Part shown: positions 12,014-51,200 of the stretch, piece after piece
How positions within the stretch are numbered: the first letter of the stretch is position 1
Layout: each line of letters starts with the position of its first letter
Source: Selaginella moellendorffii
Lineage: Eukaryota > Plantae > Lycopodiophyta
Length of the DNA: 64,000 nt
Direction of reading: 5' to 3'
Assembly (NCBI RefSeq): GCF_000143415.4
Contig: NW_003314360.1
Span: 488,595-552,594 of the forward strand
Program-made: the position numbers and the translations under genes
The notes under the pieces: generated by a model
Databases searched by the model: none
What the model saw: the letters and a program-made list of their open reading frames with translations, nothing else
Told to the model about the DNA's origin: nothing

Positions 12014-13792
12014 TTAGCTGGCGAGAGCTTCCTTGAGCTCCTTATTCTCTTTCATCTCCATGATAATGTCACAGCCCCCGATAAGCTCGCCTTTGTGGTA
12101 GAGCTGAGGATAAGTTGGCCAGTTTGAGAATGCCTTGAGCCCCTGCCTCACCTCCTCGTCACTGAGAATATCAAAGCTGCCAAATTCGATGCCTTCCTCC
12201 TTGAGTGCGCTTGCCACCTTCTTGCTAAACCCGCACTTTGGCTCCTCCGGCGTCCCTTTCATGAAAAGCATTGTCGGGGACGAGTGAATCAGCTTTTTCA
12301 GCCGGCTGTTGATGTCTTCCTTTTCCTCTGTCGCCCCCACAGCTTCCTTGAGCTCGCCACTCTTGTGCATTTCCATGACGATGTCGCATCCACCTATCAG
12401 CTCGCCCTTGAAGTATAGCTGCGGAAACGTTGGCCAGTTGGAGAAGGACTTGATGCCTTGCCGGACCTCTTCGTCGCTCAGAATGTCGAAGGAGCCAAAA
12501 GGAACTCCCACCTCCTCGAGTGCTCCCGCCACTTTCTTGCTGAAACCGCACTTTGGCTCCGACGGACTCCCTTTCATGAACAGCATCACGTCGTGCGAGT
12601 GGATAAGCTTCTTTAGACGCTCCTCGAGAGTTTCCTCCGGTCCCTTGTCGGATCCATTGGCGTGAGCTTTGCTGCCATTCTCTTGCGACTTTAGCTTGGC
12701 GTCCGCAAGAGCTTCTCCCAGCTCCCCGCTCTTGTGCATCTCCATTATCACATCACACCCTCCCAAAAGCTCGCCTTTGTAGTACAGCTGCGGGTATGTG
12801 GGCCAGTTGGAGTAGAGCTTCAAACCTTGACGGACTTCTTCGTCTTGCAAGATGTCGAAGCTCCCAAAATCCACGGACTCCTCCTTGAGCAAACTCACCA
12901 CATTCCGGCTGAAGCCACAGCGAGGCTCTTCGGGGCTCCCCTTCATGAACAGCATCACGGGCTTGGAGCTAACGAGCTTGTCCAGCTTTGACTTGAGCTC
13001 ACCGGACACCGAAGAAGGAGGCTCCTCGGACTTGATTTCCGTCTTGCTCGCTCCATTCTCCTTTGGAGGAGCAGCTTCCCCCGCCAAAGCCTCAACTTTG
13101 GTGGCCAATTCGGCTGGATTCGCGCCCTCCAGCTTGTCGATCACCTCCTGGTTCTGCATCACAAACAGCACACAAGAGTAAGAAAACAACGACCAGATGC
13201 AGCGATTCAGTGACTTTTCCTTTTCTACCTTTATAAAAACGAAGTAAGGCACCACAGAAACGCTGTACTTTTCGGATATTTCTGGATGCTCCTCGGCTTC
13301 AACCTGTGAGTACAATAATTGGTGGATGTTTATTAGTCAAGTCTAGGCAAATCAGAGAAGAGAAATCGAGCACACGCCCTGTCAAGCGAGACATGGCATA
13401 CGGCAGAAGAGAAGGGAAAAAAAAATAGCACCACCAACAACCAGACTCACTTAAGAATGAGACTTGCCATTCACAACTCCACAACAAAAATGTGACCGAT
13501 TTAGAAACGTGGAAGATGAAAGAGAAACCAAATCCAAAGAAGAAAGAACAAGACAAGCAGCAGCGAATCGAAAAAAAAAAATGCGATCCGAGAAATCGAT
13601 GAAGTATTGTATACAAACCCGGAGAAATCTGGCACGCGGAGCAGTGTCGGCACAGAGTTGCTCGAAGACGACATCCATTTGCTTGGAGGCCTCGCACCAG
13701 GGCGCACGGAAATGGAGCACGACCGATTTACCAGCCTTGACAACCTCGTCGAGATGCGCCAATCCACGAGCTTCTTCCACCATGAGCGCCAT
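12014..13792 (-). CDS. GRXS17: Monothiol glutaredoxin GRXS17 (Trx-like domain + 3 CGFS Grx domains), 3 exons
   Basis: APWCEAS Trx motif and three repeats of MLFMKG.P.EP.CGFS...SNWPT.PQLY..GEL.GGCD. Confidence 0.96.
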
Positions 13793-13880: not shown

Positions 13881-14059
13881 GCATATTCCCTCCCAGCAGA
13901 GAGCGCATATTCCGCCACCGTGGCGGCGTGGGCCCCACCCAGCGTGCAGAACCCCGTTTGCGTGCGTGGAAGGAACGGGCTGTACTCGTGCCTGGCGCCA
14001 CGTGTTGAGCTGCGAGTGGCCTGCCGGATTACTATACTGGGAGAGTGATGTGGATATCC
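13881..14059. promoter_or_regulatory. Three P1BS-like (GNATATNC) sites upstream of GRXS17
   Basis: GCATATTC at 13881 and 13905; GGATATCC at 14052. Confidence 0.4.
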
Positions 14060-14198
14060 CCCAATGTTTGGGAGCACTAAAAGAATGAGTTGTTGTGATG
14101 CAACATCAGTCTCCTTTGTGGAGGTGGAATCGAATCAAACCAACAAACATTACAATCTCTTTCCTCCAAATTCGATCGAAACTTTGTGATGTTCGATT

Positions 14199-17153
14199 TC
14201 ATCCAATTTGCCTCTTCCATTTCCTCGAAGTCATGTATGCCACCCTGTCCATGTACGCTGCATTGTTCTTGTCCCTCATGCCCGTGTCAAAGTTATAGTC
14301 GATGAGCAGCCGAACAATTCTTTGGTTCCCACATCGCACTGCAATGTCCATTGCAGTTTCTCCCGATGTTCCGGCGTTGGGCCTCGCACCCGCCCTCAGT
14401 AGTAGTTCAACCATCTCACTGTCCTGACTAGCAACTGCTTGCAACAGTGGTGTCGACACTTGATCATGGTGATACTCTAGCCCGTCCAGCACAACACCAC
14501 CTTCACTTATAAGGAGTTCCACCATGGTCTTTTCCCCTTTGAAAGCGCACTCGGCCATGAGAGATTGTCCTAAGTCTGCCCACTCCTCCTTGGAAGAAAG
14601 CTCATGTACCAGCTTCCTCAGCTTTTCCAACACCCCTCCCTCGGTATCGATTACCTGGTTAAGGTCCAAATTGGCGATCACGTCCGTGTAATCCTCCTCG
14701 TAGAGGAGGAGGCTATGCAGCTTGTCAAAAACGAGATGAACGTCACCCTTCTCAATTGCTTCCTTAAGCTCCCCCGTCTGGTAGGCTCTAGTACTGCTTT
14801 CATCCTTTCTCTCGTCATCGGTGTCGTGTGGAAGTTTCCCCATCTCTGTCAAGACGGCTAGCACTTCAGCATTCTGCCGGGCGGCTCGCGCAAGGCAGGC
14901 AAAGGACCAGCCGTCAAAGTCAAGCACCCCGGCTGCGTACTCAACCATTTCCCTGCTTCCATTTGCCCCCAGGCTCCTCCACAACCTGTCTTCAACGCGA
15001 TCATGTCGGGCTGGATCCTTCCAATGCGAGATGATGAGTTGGAAGACTGACCAGTCCCCATCTCTCGAGCATGCATGGCTGAAAGGCTCCACTCCATACA
15101 ACTTACATGCCTCCACAAAAATCCTAAGAAGTGGCAGAAAAGCCCGGTGCTGGGGCTCGATATGATGCCTGTGTCGAAACAGCTGCGCCACCTTTGCTGT
15201 AGAACTAGTTATCCCATCATTGGAAGCTGCATCAATCACGAAAACGTCCAGCTCCAGAAACGCTGTCATCACGGCTAAGCTCCAGAAGTCCATGGCATGG
15301 TAAAACAACTCTCTCAAAAAAAGCGGGTCATTCGCAGGTGTCGTTCCCAGAGTCCCCCCTCTTTCAAGCAGGAACAGGACCGCTCCCACCTTGTCACCTT
15401 CGATGGCATACGAAAGTGGAGTATTGAACTCGTTAACCAGCGCTACATTGACGTAGTCGGGCTGCTGCGCATAGTCAAGCAGGATTCTCATCAGTTTGGT
15501 GTTGCCTTGATGCGCCATTCTGTGCAGCGGTTTCAGGTTGCTGCTCGGGTGCCATGTATCGTAGTCCATTCCTAAGTCGTAGAGAAGATAGGACAGTACC
15601 TCGTCACTTTGGCCATCGCATGCTTCGTGCAGTAGCCACTCTTCTTGCACAACGATGTCTCTCCATTTGCTGGCCAGGAAGCGCAGCACAGCTGGGCTCC
15701 CTGGGCGGACGCAGATGCTGCACAGTCGGGAAACATCCCTTTCAGGGTTGAAACTCCAAGTGACCCCCGCTCTGTCCATGATATACTCGACGCCCATTTT
15801 GAAATCAATCTTGCAAAAGAGATGTAGCAGCGTGTTCCCATCAATGTCTACCACCATGTTCTTGCTTGGCTGCTCAACGAAAGCGTCCAGAACGTTAGGG
15901 AACCTTCTCCTGAGACGGTTGAGCATGTCCCTGTACTCTGCCGACGAAACGAATGCAAGATCATTGTTGTTGTTGTTGTTGTTGCAGCTGTCGCATCGGA
16001 CGACATTCCATAGCTTATCATAAGCAGCGTGTGCATGTTCCAGGCACTGCTCCAGGGAGAATCTATTTGTACGATCCTGGCAGCAGCCGTCAACCATGGC
16101 AAAGAGCTCGTAAAAAACTGGCTCGATCACAGGCTGTTTCAAGCCTGGTGGAATTTCAAGAGTCACTGGACAGCCTGGGAATATCTTGTTGTCAATAATT
16201 TCCTCGATCTCATCACGCTTCTCAGGGCCATCAGGGATGAAACCATCCCAGGACATCTCGATCCATAGCATGCCCAAGGAGTATACATCTGATGGGAAAG
16301 GATTATCCACAATGAGCTTAAAGCCTTCTGGATCATCCAGCGCATCTGAAACCTCAGGCGATATCCAGAACAGCGACCCGCCCAGCGAGTTGAGGTAATC
16401 AACGTCTCTCACCTTGAAGCTGAATCCAAAGTCTCCGAGCTTGGGCGTGCAGAAGCTGTCCAAAAGCACGTTTCTACCTTTGAGATCTCCGTGGTAAACG
16501 CCATTTCGATGGCAAGTCTTTACTCCCACCACCACCTCCATGAAGATTTCCAGCTTTGTCTTCCACCAAGATGGAAGCTCTTCCAAGCCCGGACCCCGAG
16601 ACTTAAGAAACCTGCTAAGATCACCGTGCGGGCCTTCCACGAGCTCCATGACGATGCAGACGCCATTGAGATCGCTGTTGCGGGTAACCCCATAGACATG
16701 CACCACATTCCTGGTTCCTTGTAGCACCCTTACATTGCAGGCCTCCCTCAAGACTTCCACAACCTCATCCAGTTCAACTTCGCCAGTGTCGATTTTCTTA
16801 ACAGCAACTGTTATCATTTTCTCGCTGTGGTCGCCTTTCAAAATGGACCTTGACGGCGTTTGGTGCCTTTTTGCGTTAACCCAAGGCCCTCTGCTAAGCT
16901 CAAACCTCTCTCCATGGCTCCCCATCAGCATACCTTTAAAGATTTTTCCAAAGCTTCCGCCATCGATGCTCCCTACAGAAGCCAGCTTTAGAGTGTCCAG
17001 CAGATATGTCTCTGCGCGTCTGTACAAGTCAACAGCTACTGCTGGATCCCTTAGATCTTCCCAAGCCTGCATAGCGGCTTCATACCGCGATATCAAGTAC
17101 TCCGAATCTGAAACAGATGACTCTAGCTCAAATTTTGATGTTAAGGAGGCCAT
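14199..17153 (-). CDS. Non-RD TKL-type protein kinase with C-terminal ankyrin repeats (RIPK4/ANKK1-like architecture), intronless
   Basis: Kinase motifs GGSFG, VAVKK, alphaC Glu (LREA), HGDLKGRN, DFG, WISPE, DVYSLG. Ankyrin motifs GNTLLH, LLHEAC, KPLHRMA..GN, TPLSYAI, TPLLQAV, GETAMDIA. First ATG is at 17153. Confidence 0.9.
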   Translation of the reverse strand: MASLTSKFELESSVSDSEYLISRYEAAMQAWEDLRDPAVAVDLYRRAETYLLDTLKLASVGSIDGGSFGKIFKGMLMGSHGERFELSRGPWVNAKRHQTPSRSILKGDHSEKMITVAVKKIDTGEVELDEVVEVLREACNVRVLQGTRNVVHVYGVTRNSDLNGVCIVMELVEGPHGDLSRFLKSRGPGLEELPSWWKTKLEIFMEVVVGVKTCHRNGVYHGDLKGRNVLLDSFCTPKLGDFGFSFKVRDVDYLNSLGGSLFWISPEVSDALDDPEGFKLIVDNPFPSDVYSLGMLWIEMSWDGFIPDGPEKRDEIEEIIDNKIFPGCPVTLEIPPGLKQPVIEPVFYELFAMVDGCCQDRTNRFSLEQCLEHAHAAYDKLWNVVRCDSCNNNNNNNDLAFVSSAEYRDMLNRLRRRFPNVLDAFVEQPSKNMVVDIDGNTLLHLFCKIDFKMGVEYIMDRAGVTWSFNPERDVSRLCSICVRPGSPAVLRFLASKWRDIVVQEEWLLHEACDGQSDEVLSYLLYDLGMDYDTWHPSSNLKPLHRMAHQGNTKLMRILLDYAQQPDYVNVALVNEFNTPLSYAIEGDKVGAVLFLLERGGTLGTTPANDPLFLRELFYHAMDFWSLAVMTAFLELDVFVIDAASNDGITSSTAKVAQLFRHRHHIEPQHRAFLPLLRIFVEACKLYGVEPFSHACSRDGDWSVFQLIISHWKDPARHDRVEDRLWRSLGANGSREMVEYAAGVLDFDGWSFACLARAARQNAEVLAVLTEMGKLPHDTDDERKDESSTRAYQTGELKEAIEKGDVHLVFDKLHSLLLYEEDYTDVIANLDLNQVIDTEGGVLEKLRKLVHELSSKEEWADLGQSLMAECAFKGEKTMVELLISEGGVVLDGLEYHHDQVSTPLLQAVASQDSEMVELLLRAGARPNAGTSGETAMDIAVRCGNQRIVRLLIDYNFDTGMRDKNNAAYMDRVAYMTSRKWKRQIG

Positions 17154-17203
17154 GCAGGCTTGCCCCACGCTCAGAAATTGTGCCCCCTATACATACACGC
17201 GCT

Positions 17204-17529
17204 CTCATCTAATTGAGCAATTCTTAGTCCACTGATCCCTTGCTTTGACAAAGTCAAGCAGAATTAATTGGAATGAGAAGTCAACTGATCCTCATCTAAT
17301 TTAGCAATTTAGTCAACTGATCCCTTGCTTTGGTAGCTTCTTCTTCTTGACTTTGTTGATCAAGTGTGGCAAACAGCTGGAACACACTTCAGAAACAAGT
17401 TGGCTGACGATCAAAGTTGCTGATTGATTGATCGTGCGAGAGATCGAAAAATGAAGAATTTTCAGAGTCATACGCACTCATCATGGAAGAGATCACCGCC
17501 ATTAATTGGAATGAGAAGTCAACTGATCC
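17204..17529. promoter_or_regulatory. Bidirectional promoter with direct repeats and five W-boxes (TTGACT)
   Basis: Repeat A at 17204-17247 and 17291-17332; repeat B at 17263-17291 and 17501-17529. AGTCAA at 17252, 17279, 17311 and 17517; TTGACT at 17347. Confidence 0.7.
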
Positions 17530-17588
17530 AATGCATGATCTAATATAAGTTCTTCAATAAATATGTGTGAAGATCGATTCACCGGAAT

Positions 17589-18926
17589 ATGGCGACTGAG
17601 GGCTTGGTCGCCGCAGGCGCTAGTGCAGCATTGGGAGCTCTTCGAGGAGATCTTCGAGGAACAGCCGACCTTCTGATCAAGCTTGCTTGTGCTGCTCGCA
17701 ACAGCATAGGCAGATGCCAGGCGATGGCAGACAAGGTGAAGATGGTTACCACCGCCCTCGAGAGCAGATCATACAGGTACGACGATGTCAACCTTCAGGC
17801 TAATCTAGAAAAGCTGCTAGTTGTGATGAAAGACTGCGTGTGTCTTGTCGAGAAACACAGCAAGACGAGTACGGTGAGCTTCTTCTTCTCGTGCCACGCT
17901 CTCACTGTTGACGAATTTGACGACCTCGACGCGCGCCTCAATCGCTGCATCAGCTGCTTGAATCTGAACTTCCACATCTCCTCGTATGATCGCAGTCATG
18001 AGCACAAAGACGAGATCATAGCCCAAGTACAGGCCAACACAGCACGAACTATTGAGGAGATAAAGCAGCTGGTCCATGGCCAGGAGCCCGTAGAATATTT
18101 GACAGCCGTGCAGGGCGTTGTGACCATGGGTGAAGCCTTGGCCGGGGACTACATGATATCTGCGACGCTCACCGACAACAGCTCCTCAGTGTCACGGAAA
18201 GTCATCCTAGTGCAGTCACACGAGACAAAGAAGGAAGTTGCGATCCTGGAGAAACTAAGCCTTCACGAGTGCATACTTGAGTTTCTTGGCATCTTTCCAT
18301 ATGGTGAGTCCAAGTTTTATCTTGTCTTTGAGAGGCCCTCCGAGGAAATGACAACCTTGGACGAACTGATCAATAAGAACCCGGGGAGTTTTATGAGTGA
18401 CTGGAGAGTAAAGAGACAGATCGCTCTGGAGCTGGCAAGAGGTATGAGAGTCTCTCATCTGGCCGGTGTGGTCCACAAGAATTTCCGCAGCTCCAACATA
18501 TTTCTTAGCGGTGACCTTCAGCACGCTAAGATCTTTGGCTTCTACCAGGGAAGGATCAAGCTGGAGCCAAGTGCCAAGAAGTGGATGAACGATGAGCAAG
18601 TCCGCTGGGCTGCACCTGAGCAAGTTCAGAGACACCGACCTGCCTTTGATGAAAAGTGTGACATCTACTCACTGGGAGTGGTGATTTGGGAGCTCATCAC
18701 TGGGAACTTTCCTTTCGCCAAATACACTAACTACCGAAAACTTAGTAGAGATCGGAGCGAAAATGTTGCCCTCTTGGATGACTTCCCTGTGGAATGCAAA
18801 GCAGGTGAACTGGGCAAGTTCAGCAGAATCTCTGAGCTCTGTAGAGATCCTTTGCCTGATAACAGACCATCTCTCGAGAACATTATCAATGATCTCCACA
18901 AGCTCCTTCCTGAAGAGATGATTTGA
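17589..18926 (+). CDS. MLKL-like protein: N-terminal four-helix-bundle/HeLo-like domain + pseudokinase, intronless
   Basis: Helical N-terminus of ~130 aa (ARNSIGRCQAMADKV...LEKLLVVMKDC...FDDLDARLNRC). Kinase fold with VILV in place of VAIK, HKNFRSSN in place of HRD, IFGF in place of DFG; WAAPE, DIYSLG and RPS are retained. Confidence 0.82.
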   Translation: MATEGLVAAGASAALGALRGDLRGTADLLIKLACAARNSIGRCQAMADKVKMVTTALESRSYRYDDVNLQANLEKLLVVMKDCVCLVEKHSKTSTVSFFFSCHALTVDEFDDLDARLNRCISCLNLNFHISSYDRSHEHKDEIIAQVQANTARTIEEIKQLVHGQEPVEYLTAVQGVVTMGEALAGDYMISATLTDNSSSVSRKVILVQSHETKKEVAILEKLSLHECILEFLGIFPYGESKFYLVFERPSEEMTTLDELINKNPGSFMSDWRVKRQIALELARGMRVSHLAGVVHKNFRSSNIFLSGDLQHAKIFGFYQGRIKLEPSAKKWMNDEQVRWAAPEQVQRHRPAFDEKCDIYSLGVVIWELITGNFPFAKYTNYRKLSRDRSENVALLDDFPVECKAGELGKFSRISELCRDPLPDNRPSLENIINDLHKLLPEEMI

Positions 18927-19189
18927 AAGTTGAAGTGCTTCATATTTCGGTGCAGTGTGTGAAGAAAATTATAGTAAAAGAGCTTGGATCTTAGATCATC
19001 CATTTCTTGAAAGCGCATTTGGCTCCGGAGGCAGATCCTTGCAATCTTGTATGCTGGTACTGGTTGACATGCTCATGCTCAAATCAGGTTCATGGCCTTT
19101 AAGGAGAAAAAGTAAAGTAAATATTCTCTCGGTTCAAGGTTATCTTAGAATATCAAGTTTTGTATGGAGTTTGTTAAAATGAATGCTTC

Positions 19190-20520
19190 TAAGAGAACCA
19201 CAATCACAAAGAATGTAAAATAATGATAAATTTTCATCAAACAATTTCTAATGTTAAAAATCGGTTTTAGGGTTTATCAATAAGTGAGGAGAAAACTATT
19301 AAAATATATAGAAAATATTAAATTATATAAGTTATCTAAACTTTATTAGATAAAATATAATATAGGATAAAGTTTTCTTAAATTACACACAAATATTTTT
19401 TAAAATAAAACAATTTACCATTTATAATTACAATCTTAATTTATTATTTCTAAACTCTTTGTGACCATTATGAGTGGCTAATTTTTTATCTTTACCCATA
19501 GAAATTCATAATTAATAATGATTTGCACTATCTAGATAAGTTATCATACTTTTTTACTTGTGATTAGAAAACATGGCATATAAACCTTTTTTTTCTTACT
19601 CAAAATAGCTCCTTAAATTCTATTTATAAAAAAAATAAAGTGGAAATATATTTTATTTTAATATCTTAAGTATAAAGATTATAAAAATTAACTATATTTA
19701 GGCTCAATAAAAAAAATTTGTATTCAAGATGTTTATATTTTAAGTTATAAAAATTGTTATTATTGAGATCCTTGAACAGTTTACAGCAGTTAAATATTAT
19801 TATTTTATTATAGTAAGATCTTATATATAGGTAATTACTTCTCAAAGATATATAAATATAATAGGTAGTAATCTTTGAGGTAGTAAATATATAGGTAATT
19901 ACTGTAATTATATTTTATAAATATTTAAAATTTTCATTTTGCAACTCATGCAGGGTTAGAGTTAATACTGTTATTTGTAGTATCTTAAATTTTTATTTTT
20001 CATGTTTTCTTCTAAATATCATAATCAAGATCAAATCATCTAACCCATATGAAATTTTTAGTCTTTTCATATACATTTATAATAAATCATTTGTTTTTTC
20101 CATCTAGAAATCATTGATCTTACTACAATGAACAAAACTATAAAATGGAAAAAATCTTGCATAGCTTGCAACAAACATTTATTGAGGGATGTACATGACT
20201 TGTAATACCAAAAAGAAAAGAATGGGATAGATACTGTCAAGAGTATTGAATAATTTCATGGACACAAACTCTGAAAATGTGTATTAAGATTTTGTTGAAT
20301 CAGATTTCAACATATATTTTAGTGCCTACACTAAATGCTAGTTAGTAGCATATTTCTAAGGCATGAATCTCTATTACATTTGTCCTTATAGAAGATTAGC
20401 TTCCACCAGAAAAGATCCCAGGAAGGCTTACTAAATATAAACATCCATAATTAGACTTTGGTATTTATTTGAAACCAGGAAATATCTGAATGGTACTTTG
20501 AAAACTATTTGTTGTAATCA
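19190..20520. other. Strongly AT-rich, ORF-free degenerate tract (probable decayed transposon or pseudogene)
   Basis: Abrupt compositional shift, CG depletion and no ORF >60 aa, inside an otherwise gene-dense region. Confidence 0.55.
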
Positions 20521-32620: not shown

Positions 32621-34417
32621 TTACTTGGGGAGGTTCTCGGAGAGCTGTGTCATGAAGGCACCGACGGATGCTGCGTCTGTCTGGATCCACGCGGCGTCGA
32701 AACCATCCTGCTGGAAATCTACACCCAAGTTGGCTGCCACCGTCTTGAACACGGAGCCAAACCGGTTCCCCATCTGAGCTCCCAGCCGGAGCCTGTGTGA
32801 GACGCCAACCACGAGTGCCTTGTCCGATTGAGGACAGCGAATGGCGCAGACGAGCGGCTTGCTCCGAGCACCTTGCTCCCGGAGAGCGTCCATGACGAAG
32901 TAGCAGAGCTTGGTGAGAGCCATGGGACGAGCAAGAAGCTCCACGTCGTGACCATCCTCGAGCTTGAACCACCTGAACATCTTGGTGTTCTTTACGAATC
33001 CCTGCTTTGTCACCGCTAAGCTTCCCTGCCTCAGTATCGCGCGCTGGACCTTGATGGCTAGTTCCATTCCCTGCTGGAGCTCATGCCACTTCTTTGGCGC
33101 CAGTGCCGAATAGGCCCGCATGAACTGGCCGCCGTGGTCATCGCAGCTTGCCTCGAGCAGTGCTGTGAGCCCGTAGACAACATCTGCCGCAGATACTTCG
33201 GAGCTGTATCCGTGGAGCTTCTGGAAACTACGGTAGTACAGGTCGGTCAGGCCAAACTGCGGTGACGACCTCTGGAATTCCTCCTTCATTCTGCGTCGAG
33301 TCTCTCCGCTCATATACTCGTACTTCTGCTGGCCTTCCACCAGCGCAATCCCCATGGTGGCCAGCAGCAACTTGAGCCTCTTGAGCCCCCCGTCACTCCA
33401 GGTCTTGAGCTTGGTGGCCACGTACGAGGAACACAGCATGGAATCATACAGCGTCCACTCTCTCAGCAGCATCAACCGTGGCTCCTCGTCGTTCGTAATG
33501 CGAGACCTGTCTGGCGCCTTAACCACGGTCCCGTCTTTCATGGTCACCTTTGTTACCATCTCCGAGTTGCCGGAGGTCTTGACGTAAGTGTCCAGCTCCA
33601 TGACCCCCGACTGGTATCTCTCCATGGTGAGCCTTTCGTGAACAAACTGGTCCGTGAGGGAGACGCATGCCAGCCACAGAAGCTCGTGGGTGTTGATGTG
33701 CAAGGCGTGAGAGATATCATACACTTGACGCCCAGCAGCTCTCCCGTGAAACGTCCCTGTTGAGTAGTAGTCTTTCTTCCGTCTCCGCATATCTCTCCTC
33801 AAGTTGTCCGCGTGATCAGAAGAGTCGTCCCTGCCCCTGCCCCTGCCCCTTTTCCTCATGTTATCGTGCTTGTCACCACCACCACCACCATCGAGTTCCT
33901 CTTCATCGTCGGATTCTTCCTCGTCTTCGTCTTCTTCACCATCGCTGGCAGCAGTCATAAATGAGAAATCCGCGAGGGAGCCAACATCAAAGTCGTAGAC
34001 AATGTCCCTCTCCATCTCCTCCTCGCGGGTATAGAGCACGGTTACCTGCTGGTTGTGATCACTCCAATTGTTGAGGTGGATGGGCCTGTGACTGTCCACC
34101 ACAAACACAAGAACCCTAGGCCCCAGCTTGAGCTGCCGCCGGAGATCTTGGGTGCCTCCCCAGTTGATGAGCAGCACCACCACCGGCTCCTCCGCCTGGA
34201 TGGCCGCGGCACGGCTGCCCACATCGGCCATTCTCGACACTGGGAACACCGAGTGGCGCACATTGTCCGCGTTGAGGATGGAGCGAAAGATCTTGAGCGC
34301 GCACACCGAATCGGCGTCCACCGTCGAGGGGAGGATGTGGAGAGGGCAAGAGGAGGCGGCAGAGGCGGCGGATTTGAGGCGCCGGTAGAAGTGAGCTCCG
34401 CTGCTCTCTCGCACCAT
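32621..34417 (-). CDS. CDC45: DNA replication factor CDC45, intronless
   Basis: DADSVCALKI, VVDSHRPIHLNN, acidic loop, RLMLLREWTLYDSM, EVSAADVVY. Confidence 0.96.
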   Translation of the reverse strand: MVRESSGAHFYRRLKSAASAASSCPLHILPSTVDADSVCALKIFRSILNADNVRHSVFPVSRMADVGSRAAAIQAEEPVVVLLINWGGTQDLRRQLKLGPRVLVFVVDSHRPIHLNNWSDHNQQVTVLYTREEEMERDIVYDFDVGSLADFSFMTAASDGEEDEDEEESDDEEELDGGGGGDKHDNMRKRGRGRGRDDSSDHADNLRRDMRRRKKDYYSTGTFHGRAAGRQVYDISHALHINTHELLWLACVSLTDQFVHERLTMERYQSGVMELDTYVKTSGNSEMVTKVTMKDGTVVKAPDRSRITNDEEPRLMLLREWTLYDSMLCSSYVATKLKTWSDGGLKRLKLLLATMGIALVEGQQKYEYMSGETRRRMKEEFQRSSPQFGLTDLYYRSFQKLHGYSSEVSAADVVYGLTALLEASCDDHGGQFMRAYSALAPKKWHELQQGMELAIKVQRAILRQGSLAVTKQGFVKNTKMFRWFKLEDGHDVELLARPMALTKLCYFVMDALREQGARSKPLVCAIRCPQSDKALVVGVSHRLRLGAQMGNRFGSVFKTVAANLGVDFQQDGFDAAWIQTDAASVGAFMTQLSENLPK

Positions 34418-48217: not shown

Positions 48218-51200
48218 ATGGCGGATGAGAAAATAGAAGAGTATGTAGAATTCATAGAAGACACAGATGGAGCAGAGGCCCATGAATTCTCCCTTTCTGA
48301 GCAGAGAGTGAATGTAGATCTGGTTCTGCGGGTGTTTTCGGCCATGTCCGTCACTGTGAAGCGCGTTGAGAACGAAAAGGTTCGATGGAGGGCTCTAGAG
48401 GCAAGAAAAGAAGACGGCCTCAGCAAAGCCATGTTCGATGCTGGATCTTCTCACATCGTTCGTGCCGGGAGGCCTGGTAAACACTCATTTTCTAAGCATT
48501 GTGTTTCGCCTGGGTAGTCATAGCGCTGTGGGTTTCCCGTGTGGCCCTTGTGAGTTGGATCTGATATCTTGTGTGTCTTCCATGATCTGTGTTTGTCTGG
48601 GTTGTTTCAGGCTATGGTATTCTTCTGTTGCTTGCTTGACCTGCGGCGCTCATTTGGGCGAGTTTGTTTCTATTTGGCCTTGGCGTGGGTTATGTTTTGG
48701 CTATGGCATCTGTGCTTTGTCGTGTGCTGTTTGATGAAGTGGCTATGGCGTCAGGCTTTTGTTCGTGGCCGTTTGCTTGTTGGGCTGGATGTTTTTGTAT
48801 CAGCCACGATTTTGTAGTCTGCCTGATTGCGATTGTGCTCATTGCTTTCATGTAGTCTGGTGTTTTCCGGTTGTTGTCCCTGCATGCGTCTATTTGTGTT
48901 TGGTGCGGCTCTGGTGTTTTTCTATGTAGTTGTGAACTGTTCTGACAACTTTTTGTGTGCTGCAGTGCCCTCTGCGACAGCTCTTCAGGCTGCACCAGGT
49001 AAGCATCCATTCTTGTATACTCTTGTGGGTTTGTAACTTGACGTTTGAGGTACGAGATCTGAGTATGTGTGTGATCTTGCTCTCGTGCTGTTGGATTGTT
49101 GGTATTCTGCGATCTTTTGGAATTGATTAAATGGACCTTATTGCAGTCGATTGGGCCAGTGTGGTCACACCATGTTGGCTATGTTGCTCACTCCTTTTCT
49201 TGCCTGAAACAGAAACAAAAACAACCATAACAGGATCGGCCCTGTTACAGGCGTGTGATACTTCCATCTCCACGAAATCGCGGTTCATATCTCTGTTGGC
49301 TCCTCACGAGTTGGGTTATAAGGCGAAATTTCCCTCGGCCCGGACACTCATGTGCGCGCTTAGTAACCTGCCATGCCTTCTATGGGAAGGCGTAGGAGAT
49401 GGACTTGTGGAGCTCGACAATCGGTTTGCGCAGAGGTTGTCAGAGCGCCAGATCACTGTGCTCTTGGCTCCCAGCGGTTCAGGAAAAACGAGAATGTTGA
49501 TCGAACTTGCCTGCAGTAGATTCACGTTGTTTCTCACGGGTAAGCGTCCGATGGTTGGATTTGGAGGAGGATCGGATGATGTAGACAGGGTTGCCAGGTG
49601 GATGGAGACTCGGTTGCCCGCAGGTGAACACGATCTTGATCCGAATCATGCAGTGGTGCGGTTTGGTGTTGGGATTTTGATTCTTGTCCGGTTGAAATAT
49701 TTGAAGTTGCTGAAAGCGCTGAAACCTGGGCTTCATCCTCGTGATTGGGCTTTTTTCCAGTTGGAGTACCCGGCAGTTGATGATGTCTTCCATGCTGCGG
49801 TTGAAGCCTTGATCGATTGTGTCCCAGTGGATCAGCAACTGCCTATGGATCAGCTGACGGAGGCTATAAGGAATCTTGCAGATGACATTGGCTGGAAGGA
49901 GGGGGTGGTTGTCCTTGATGAGGCTCAAATGCTGCTTCATTGTATGAAAGGTCGATTCAAGTCTGAACTCACTCCTACGAAAGGGCAGCCGTCGTTGAAC
50001 CCCATGTTACTGGCTCTGAAGTCGTACGGTTTCTTGAAGAGCTGCTTGTTTGTTGCGGGCACTGGCACGAGTATGCTTAAGGTTCGGGAAAGACTTCTGG
50101 GAGGGACAGTGAAGCCTTTCGATGTAACCGAAATTTATAGCTTACCTGGCTTTGACGACACCAACATTCCAGCCTTTCTCCAACGGTTTATAGATATCAG
50201 CAGGCTGGACATGCCCGCGATTACCTCCATGTACACTGGAAGAAGGCGACTTTTGAGCACGGCGATTGAGAAGTACGTTGTGCAGGACAAACCACCAGAG
50301 GATTGGTTCCAAGTTTTCTTCTTGGAGTTGATCAACAAGCCTGGGGTGGAGCTTGGACTTCTTCGGTCTTTAAGGGATGAAGCGGAGCGGGTGTGGGATG
50401 ATCCAGAGATGGCACAAATGATTGAGGACATTCTGTTCACGTATTATCTTACAGGTATGTGTCGCTGATTCTTTACAGATATATTCCTCATGCTGGTTTT
50501 TTCCAGGTTTTGGTCATGTTATTGTGCAGCGGAAGAGGAGTGTCATGACCTTAGTTGATTGTGGCTTTGCAACGCTGCTTGAGAGTGACGCCAGTGCCGG
50601 ACCTTTTGCACCGATTATTCCACACATAAGAGGGGTGAGGGGTGATGAAGCCGGACCTGGTTCTTCAGGTCCGGCTAACGTGCGATACGTGATCCTTCAA
50701 GAGCCGATGATTGCAGAAGCACTCTGGGACCATATGCCTGCTGGTACAGTAATGGAGCGAGTCATCAGCACAGCTGCAGACGCATCAGTCCTTGGCATTA
50801 CCTTTGAGCGGTTTGCGTGCATCGTGGGGGAGGCATTTGACAACAAGCTACCAGCTGAGGTTTTGGGTTTGCAGGAAACAGATGTGGTCTACAAGGAGGA
50901 GTATGAAGTTGTAAGGCCAAGAGGGCACTCGGGGGTGCTGGTTCAGGAGATTCGGACTGAAGAACAGTTGAACCTGTGGCTTGAAGCTGTTGAGGCTGGT
51001 GCATCGTTTGCTACTTATGCATGGCTTGGACCATTCCAAGAAGCTGGACCAGATGGGATGTTTCTTCTCAGAAGCAAAGAGTCGCACAAGATGATGCCTG
51101 TGTTTCTACAGTTCAGAACAGATTCTGGGCTGGGTGTGACTCAAGCTTTTTCTTCACTCGACATCATGAAGATTGACAAGATACTGCATTCAGGAGGAGC

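Follow-up and report, generated by a model that had tools for sequence, protein, structure and literature searches.

Among plants, MLKLs have so far been described for seed plants only, and those have a DUF1221 N-terminus and a long tail. A 64,000-nucleotide stretch of the Selaginella moellendorffii genome (contig NW_003314360.1, positions 488,595 to 552,594 of the forward strand; hereafter the window) raises the question of whether a spikemoss has an MLKL of its own and, if so, where it comes from. At 17589–18926 on the + strand it holds an intron-free open reading frame (ORF) of 445 codons plus stop, delimited from the reading-frame list and by translation of sub-ranges. A preliminary description of the sequence likened the degenerate kinase of this protein to that of animal MLKL and left the choice between convergence and an independent lineage. 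We consider it probable, at roughly three chances in four, that the gene is a member of a conserved MLKL-type family of seed-free plants, with a dead kinase as its switch, that this family is separate from the DUF1221-type MLKLs and that its closest relatives are proteins of Glomeromycotina. Seed-free plants would thus keep a compact MLKL matching the animal architecture, with a kinase that died by the same route.

Architecture of the spikemoss protein

An AlphaFold2 (AF2) model built with the alignment of the family described below places helices at residues 2–35, 40–59, 66–91 and 95–123, a further helix at 137–162 and then the kinase fold (mean predicted local distance difference test score, pLDDT, 69.6 and predicted template-modelling score 0.74 for the full model; pLDDT 68.6 for a domain model). 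The first four helices make up a four-helix bundle of the MLKL_N type (aa 1–123; 17589–17957, +), as indicated by AF2, by Pfam, by a profile search of the Protein Data Bank (PDB) and by structure alignment with VIA-align. MLKL_N (PF22215) is the sole Pfam family found on the N-terminus of the window protein (19.9 bits, E = 6e-4). The same family was matched by all eight family N-termini (best E = 1.4e-12), three of which also match RPW8 weakly, and precomputed MLKL_N matches exist for the Selaginella paralogue P0028 and for family member P0175. On the other hand, neither DUF1221 nor the HeLo/HELL Pfam families gave a match to the window protein (E up to 10) or to the eight family N-termini (E up to 1).

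When the N-terminal profile was run against all PDB sequences, it found only the four-helix-bundle chains of human and mouse MLKL (8e-8 to 2e-7), the next match lying at 0.11; AtMLKL3 was not retrieved from the PDB even at E = 10. Structure comparison points in the same direction. With the domain model as query, the confident matches of Foldseek are those to the MLKL executioner domain (probability 0.99–1.0, TM up to 0.65, E only 0.07–0.4), and VIA-align gives Z scores of 11.0–11.8 to MLKL over the Foldseek list. Over 48,161 representative chains, the best natural matches found by VIA-align are human MLKL (Z 11.3; 113 residues aligned, 3.3 Å), mouse MLKL (Z 10.9; 92 residues, 2.5 Å) and AtMLKL3 (6ka4, Z 10.0; 109 residues, 2.4 Å). 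Since the MLKL structure alignments begin at about residue 15 of the model, the first ~15 residues, which are rich in Ala and Gly and precede the start of animal MLKL, form an N-terminal extension of the family relative to the animal protein.

Animal MLKL has two brace helices between the bundle and the kinase domain. In the corresponding region of the spikemoss protein AF2 predicts a single helix, at 137–162 in the full model or 127–164 in the domain model, with pLDDT of 58–81. We delimit this putative brace-like linker helix as aa 137–164 (17997–18080, +); it falls inside the collinear alignment with mouse MLKL, which is gapped in this region.

The likeness also holds for the protein as a whole. 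In the PDB, the full-length family profile aligns collinearly from 24 to 443 with residues 14–460 of mouse MLKL (E = 3.7e-31) and likewise with human MLKL (7.7e-29), and both matches outrank BRAF (4e-25) and ZAK. In the ESM Atlas the first three look-alikes of the whole protein are chordate MLKL clusters (0.97–0.98), followed by a Basidiomycota MLKL_N-kinase cluster and Mucoromycota kinase clusters, while tenth place goes to a DUF1221 cluster of seed plants (0.95). Thus, the resemblance noted at first in the kinase motifs reaches well beyond them, into the N-terminal domain and the collinear order of the two domains. A full-length Foldseek search was set aside as evidence for the fold: kinase domains dominate it, and 4btf, which ranks second over 460 columns, does so with a root-mean-square deviation of 16.7, the orientation of the domains differing between the model and 4btf.

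The C-terminal part is a pseudokinase domain of the tyrosine kinase-like (TKL) type (aa 172–445; 18102–18923, +; Pfam Pkinase 1e-23, PK_Tyr_Ser-Thr 1e-21), whose best PDB match as a single sequence is the MLKL pseudokinase 6vbz (8e-15). Translation and alignments locate the catalytic loop HKNFRSSNIFL at aa 296–306 (18474–18506, +), where HRD has become HKN and the catalytic Asp is Asn298. The DFG position reads AKIFGFY (18525–18545, +; AKIFGF, aa 313–318, being 18525–18542), with GFY for DFG and Gly317 for the Asp, and is aligned by HMMER with KLAGFE of MLKL and KIGDFG of BRAF. The motifs of animal MLKL cited in the preliminary description are indeed those found in the PDB alignments (LHRNISSSSFLV and KLAGFE in mouse, LHGKIRSSNFLV and KLAGFE in human). 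Its list of retained motifs is equally sound: AAPE is present at aa 341–344, DIYSLG at 358–363 and NRPS at 425–428.

The further claim that both the Gly-rich loop and the β3 Lys appear lost needs to be divided. No β3 Lys was found in either of two alignments, which place VILVQ with Q209 (register of Pfam and BRAF) or T/D195–196 (HMMER alignment to mouse MLKL) at its position; the β3 strand itself reads SRKVILVQS (18192–18218, +; AF2 strand 202–210), with Q209 in place of the VAIK Lys, a position at which the family shows A, S, V or Q. The Gly-rich loop is half kept, as GEALAG (GxAxxG, G181–G186; 18129–18146, +), its middle Gly being lost in all family members. In animal MLKL, the β3 Lys underlies nucleotide binding without catalysis. 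Nucleotide binding by the spikemoss protein seems doubtful, since this Lys is missing and the link between β3 and αC is seemingly shorter than in BRAF.

Within the activation loop, Ser328 (18570–18572, +) occupies a family-invariant column and is a candidate regulatory phosphosite. HMMER aligns it to chain residue 352 of 4btf, which we take to be native mouse Ser347, beside Ser345, although an alignment within this loop is suggestive only. The chain numbers of 4btf exceed the native ones by 5, as K219 and Q343 of native mouse MLKL show; S345 and S347 of mouse MLKL are RIPK3 phosphorylation sites.

The protein ends in DLHKLLPEEMI, the stop following directly after helix αI, and none of the reading frames examined past the stop at 18926 continues it. 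The earlier observation of a 445-aa protein that ends after the kinase fold without a long tail therefore describes the true end of the coding sequence, which is also conserved in the family. This bears on the possibility that the gene is a truncated or diverged seed-plant MLKL of the AtMLKL1–3 type which lost its serine-rich tail. The overall architecture is the same, and the N-terminal model does fit the AtMLKL3 bundle, as given above. However, the conserved angiosperm clade carries DUF1221, which no tested family member matches; AtMLKL3 escaped the N-terminal profile; DUF1221 is represented only in tenth place among the ESM look-alikes; and the short C-terminus is kept in liverwort, lycophytes and fern, with contigs ending some 57 nt past the stop. 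We regard such a truncation as very improbable, and the data support a lineage distinct from the DUF1221-type MLKLs. In this respect, the independent lineage considered in the preliminary description stands: the spikemoss protein lacks DUF1221, a Ser-rich tail and a sequence match to AtMLKL3.

A family of seed-free plants and its fungal relatives

An exhaustive protein search returned full-length relatives, at 33–40% identity, from a fern, a liverwort, lycophytes and metagenome sequences. They include proteins of Pteridium aquilinum (462 aa), Riccia sorocarpa (P0023, 611 aa as annotated) and Diphasiastrum complanatum (461 and 469 aa, under two adjacent locus tags), a Selaginella paralogue (P0028 and P0183, 513 or 614 aa as annotated) and members from JGI metagenomes, ENA and Logan (455–464 aa). 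BLASTP of the window protein against a Diphasiastrum relative gives E = 6e-34, and family members P0026 and P0175 have precomputed MLKL_N and Pkinase matches. In a word-indexed protein search, generic kinases swamped single-sequence and profile queries alike, and only the protein itself, P0026 and P0188 were recovered. No named seed-plant protein occurs among the family-level matches that we checked, and we found no description of this family in the literature on MLKL in lycophytes, ferns and bryophytes.

The alignment of 13 family sequences contains about 60 invariant columns, including H296, G317, the αC Glu E216 and S328. All 13 have H-[RK]-[NSK] at the HRD position (HRN, HKN, HRS or HRK), K-[IL]-F-G-[FL] at the DFG position and [VL]-[ILM]-L-[VIYF]-[ASQ] at the VAIK position; all 13 keep RW.[AV]PE, CDI[FY]SLG and RP, and share the C-terminal end L.PE[DEN][MV]. 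As the dead-kinase motifs recur in every aligned sequence, the pattern is not due to chance. Moreover, motifs and end common to all members indicate that the kinase had died before the liverwort, lycophyte and fern proteins diverged, and that the lack of a tail is ancestral.

Two side observations concern individual members. The annotated N-terminal extensions (50–160 residues) of P0023, P0028 and P0183 align with no family sequence and seem to result from faulty gene models; what is conserved in the family begins at the M[AG]E... position. Aegerolysins are membrane-binding proteins mostly familiar from fungi and bacteria, and a gene of this family is found 3.4 kb upstream of P0028, the Selaginella paralogue (at 6189–6611 of the segment of GL377587.1 that we analysed).

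Among the sequences compared, no others come as close to the family in either domain as the MLKL-like proteins of Glomeromycotina. Over the retrieved proteins, the N-terminal family profile scores 86 bits with KAG9295780.1 of Geosiphon pyriformis (P0158) and also picks proteins of Diversispora, Funneliformis, Acaulospora and Rhizophagus. Two of the Glomeromycotina proteins score above the MLKL_N threshold set by Pfam, and Sel1 repeats are a further feature of the Geosiphon protein. BLASTP aligns residues 13–444 of the window protein collinearly with 53–507 of the Geosiphon protein (E = 2e-30), the matched stretches including EQ[VI]RW, CD[IV]YS[LF]G and the terminal PEE[ML]. In the fungi, too, the kinase domain directly after the bundle has lost the DFG Asp (NFK, NFR, NFN).

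The kinase domains were then compared in a tree of 65 rows and 242 columns (LG+G4, 1000 ultrafast bootstraps), from which animal and seed-plant MLKL sequences were left out. The plant family is recovered with support 100/100 and is joined with the five bundle-adjacent fungal domains with support 95/94, while the remaining kinase domains of these fungal proteins lie in other parts of the tree. A quick kinase tree of 170 rows agrees (supports 99 and 94). Bundle and kinase thus both point to Glomeromycotina, which argues for one common two-domain unit. The fungal proteins themselves are varied: in P0040, P0102, P0042, P0107 and P0070 the bundle and its DFG-less kinase sit inside long proteins with further kinase domains, some of these with intact catalytic motifs, and P0040 has two bundles; in P0043 and P0103 the kinases after the bundle have both HRD and DFG intact.

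Several points weigh against the reading proposed here. The MLKL_N score of the window protein lies below the Pfam cut-off of 27 bits, and no other member of the family has diverged as far. VIA-align Z scores of 10–12 are also reached by unrelated designed helical bundles, and as such bundles are found at Z of about 10, the fold supports the sequence evidence but alone is no proof of homology. Under the family profile, an MLKL chain with the kinase alone, 6vbz (4e-22), ranks no higher than BRAF or ZAK; hence the lead of MLKL in the full-length comparison comes from its N-terminal part, and by score the kinase domain is not specifically MLKL-like. The kinase tree contains no animal or seed-plant MLKL. 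Between the two alleles described below dN/dS is 0.66 (14 non-synonymous and 6 synonymous changes), counts which are too small to interpret. Finally, the sequencing runs behind the evidence for expression count as RNA by guess alone.

The weak standing of 6vbz relative to RAF and ZAK would also be expected if the likeness to MLKL had arisen by convergence, that is, if an ordinary plant bundle of the MCAfunc/RPW8/MLKL_N superfamily had been fused, early in land-plant history, to a TKL kinase and this kinase had then decayed to motifs resembling those of MLKL. There is a precedent, as the MLKL architecture of monocots arose several times by independent kinase fusion (preprint 10.64898/2026.08.07.743466), and the nearest ESM Atlas neighbours of the N-terminal part alone are MCAfunc, MLKL_N and RPW8 bundles of Streptophyta (0.88–0.90), a value that provides a lead only. 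An independent fusion must nevertheless contend with both domains being collinear with the Glomeromycotina proteins, in equal order and with an equal end, with the tree support of 95/94, with the specificity of the N-terminal profile for animal MLKL in the PDB, and with the same D-to-N (HRN) and D-to-G (GF) changes in mouse MLKL. We consider it unlikely. Common descent fits these comparisons better: both domains are detectably homologous to animal and, more closely, to Glomeromycotina MLKL-type proteins, which fits the descent of a two-domain unit. Of the two origins envisaged in the preliminary description, convergence has therefore become the less likely one.

How plants and fungi came to share the unit may be explained in either of two ways, by transfer between symbionts, here the partners in the oldest symbiosis of plants with fungi, or by ancient inheritance followed by losses. 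A direct common origin of the two-domain unit of seed-free plants and arbuscular-mycorrhizal fungi, whether by transfer or as a remnant of an ancient eukaryotic MLKL, with later loss in seed plants, is a tentative possibility. Under this proposal, seed plants would have lost the unit and carry DUF1221-type MLKLs instead, and, in the case of an ancient remnant, the same eukaryotic MLKL would also be ancestral to the necroptosis executioner of animals. Among plants, it would then be spikemosses, ferns and liverworts that have the nearest counterpart to animal MLKL. Whether the MLKL bundle-plus-pseudokinase switch is ancient, symbiont-transferred or repeatedly invented thus becomes a testable question.

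Transcript, alleles and neighbouring genes

The MLKL-like gene is probably expressed. Contig coverage by Logan assemblies was examined over 14000–19900, and the view that the runs are RNA rests on their small size. Contigs cover the gene without gaps (17567–18983 or 17619–18973; four runs from four studies), stop about 57 nt past the stop codon of the 445-aa ORF and are empty over both flanks (17157–17540 and 18984–19900), with an adapter-like loose end at 17540. Gap-free contigs, empty flanks and this loose end fit an unspliced mRNA of ~1.4 kb, which we map to 17540–18983 (+).

The ORF is intact in two alleles. In the S. moellendorffii reference scaffold GL377636.1, the gene is represented by an allele whose 448-aa product shares 96.9% identity with the window protein, in surrounding DNA which is 95–98% identical to the window. 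The difference in length is due to an in-frame 9-nt insertion (ACAGCACGA) at window position 18038, which repeats Thr-Ala-Arg and is also carried by one Logan run. By domain, the non-synonymous and synonymous changes number 7 and 1 in the N-terminal part and 7 and 5 in the kinase, too few to call selection.

The reference scaffold also has a truncated duplicate of the gene upstream of a glutaredoxin gene (9913–10872 of the GL377636.1 segment analysed). This copy matches window positions 17501–18314 and 18630–18775, has an internal 315-bp deletion with 4 letters in its place and is annotated as the 170-aa SELMODRAFT_425067. Its junction was found in contigs of two runs, so that the duplicate may be transcribed. 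A contig joint from 18314 to 18630 was rejected as an intron of the MLKL-like gene: its ends are TT..AG, it has 4 inserted letters and it is the same as the joint of the truncated duplicate.

Head-to-head with the MLKL-like gene, across a 435-bp spacer, lies a divergently oriented gene for a 989-aa kinase-ankyrin protein (14199–17168, −; first ATG at 17153), with Pfam matches to Pkinase (4e-27) and ankyrin repeats. VAVK, HGD and DFG are kept, so that the kinase looks active by its motifs. It is generic, its best PDB matches being AMPK, TNIK and the insulin receptor; likeness to RIPK was looked for among its PDB matches and none was found. The arrangement brings to mind a two-gene kinase/executioner module analogous to RIPK3/MLKL, since the two genes diverge from one spacer, the neighbour retains its catalytic motifs and RNA-like contigs cover both. 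However, the neighbour is missing at the same locus of the reference scaffold, where the MLKL-like gene and the glutaredoxin gene are only ~470 bp apart, and it does not occur in the 10 kb around either the Selaginella paralogue or the Diphasiastrum gene. The data thus do not support a fixed two-gene module, and given in addition the lack of RIPK affinity in the neighbour kinase, we hold such a module to be improbable.

The structural difference between the two assemblies can be delimited to window positions 13920–17540, which correspond to 12570–12881 of the reference segment; the kinase-ankyrin gene is covered by contigs in the window and absent from the reference scaffold. Contigs of three runs depart from the window at 17156, 3 nt before the neighbour's first ATG, with a 58-letter tail that has no match anywhere in the 64-kb window.

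Other genes near the MLKL-like gene in the window encode pentatricopeptide repeat (PPR) and PPR-DYW proteins, a leucine-rich repeat receptor kinase, CDC45, a glutaredoxin and Rtf2, a set that marks the DNA as that of a land plant. CDC45 (598 aa; 32621–34417, −) and Rtf2 (389 aa; 4158–5327, −) each form one long ORF, and a tRNA-Pro(CGG) at 5291–5362 overlaps the upstream end of the listed Rtf2 ORF. Another ORF of 445 aa (49131–50468, +) was considered as a relative of the MLKL-like gene and rejected (BLASTP E = 0.89; weak AAA_25 match, E = 9e-4).

Proposed mechanism and comparison with known MLKL systems

If the spikemoss protein is an MLKL of this family, it may work as follows. The kinase would have been catalytically dead from the origin of the family, the catalytic Asp, the DFG Asp and the β3 Lys being gone, while the αC Glu, APE, the core of the C-lobe and the invariant activation-loop Ser are retained. 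If animal and Arabidopsis MLKL are a guide, the pseudokinase would most likely be a conformational switch that keeps the bundle inactive. A trigger, for instance phosphorylation of the activation loop or the binding of a partner, would free the bundle for oligomerisation and action at membranes, with ion flux, immunity or cell death as possible outcomes. We infer all the functional steps of this switch from the MLKLs of other organisms.

The protein could instead be a non-lethal signalling scaffold, in which pseudokinase and bundle serve protein interaction or immunity without permeabilisation of membranes. That the bundle of the window protein is the most diverged of the family would agree with such a role. 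On the other hand, the bundle is kept across the family and its N-terminal helix is Ala/Gly-rich and hydrophobic, features which bear on the question indirectly, and we find a pure scaffold rather unlikely. Compared with it, the MLKL-like switch is the reading that we prefer, and the small intron-free genes of this family lend themselves to testing a pseudokinase-gated membrane executioner in early-diverging land plants, in which no RIPK3 is known.

Among known systems, the fungal HeLo/HELL proteins such as HET-S and HELLP usually have an amyloid motif besides their HeLo or HeLo-like domain. According to a review (PMC12881547), the fusion partner of a fungal HELL domain is in some cases a kinase or pseudokinase. 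Unlike these proteins, the spikemoss protein has neither a HeLo/HELL match nor a C-terminal prion-forming region.

Seed-plant MLKLs (AtMLKL1–3) share with it the order of helical bundle, brace and pseudokinase, and their bundle has a similar fold (6ka4). They differ in their DUF1221 N-terminus, their serine-rich C-terminal region and their length of ~700 aa. Indeed, Mahdi et al. (bioRxiv 10.1101/681015) describe plant MLKLs as a family that spans the seed plants and has a serine-rich region at the C-terminus, and DUF1221 is carried by the conserved angiosperm clade, other monocot MLKLs having originated from independent kinase fusions (preprint 10.64898/2026.08.07.743466). Outside seed plants, Chia et al. 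(2024, PMC11218826, Data Set S1) obtained positive NLRtracker counts of '(MLKL)(PKin)' proteins for Sphagnum, Azolla and Salvinia, whereas S. moellendorffii, Diphasiastrum and Marchantia have a count of zero. These proteins, of which the counts in that supplementary table are what is available, are probably members of the same family; no description or analysis of the Sphagnum, Azolla and Salvinia proteins was found in the literature.

Closer to the spikemoss protein are the MLKL-like proteins of Glomeromycotina, e.g., KAG9295780.1, with their collinear bundle and DFG-less kinase and their terminal PEE[LM]. MLKL homologues with Sel1 repeats (TCDB 1.A.105) are reported to be exclusive to Glomeromycotina among early-diverging fungi (PMC8778642). 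The fungal proteins differ in having Sel1 repeats or extra kinase domains, and some of them two bundles; in the 445-aa protein no Sel1 repeat or extra kinase domain was found, Pfam giving only Pkinase and the weak MLKL_N match. Some also keep the HRD Asp (as HHD) and the β3 Lys.

Compared with vertebrate MLKL (4BTF, 6LK5), the spikemoss protein lacks the β3 Lys, has ~15 additional Ala/Gly-rich residues at its N-terminus and a single predicted brace-like helix, and shows a sequence identity of only ~15–20%. A RIPK3/RHIM partner was not identified in the analysis of the window, and none is known from plants. Yet the domain order is the same, the lengths are nearly equal (445–465 aa versus ~470 aa) and both are tailless; both combine a bundle of the MLKL_N type with a kinase that has HRN or HKN for HRD and GF for DFG and keeps APE and the C-lobe. 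With mouse MLKL the agreement extends to the individual substitutions, its HRN and GFE corresponding to HKN and GFY of the spikemoss protein, and, as far as the loop can be aligned, to the position of Ser328 beside the RIPK3 sites.

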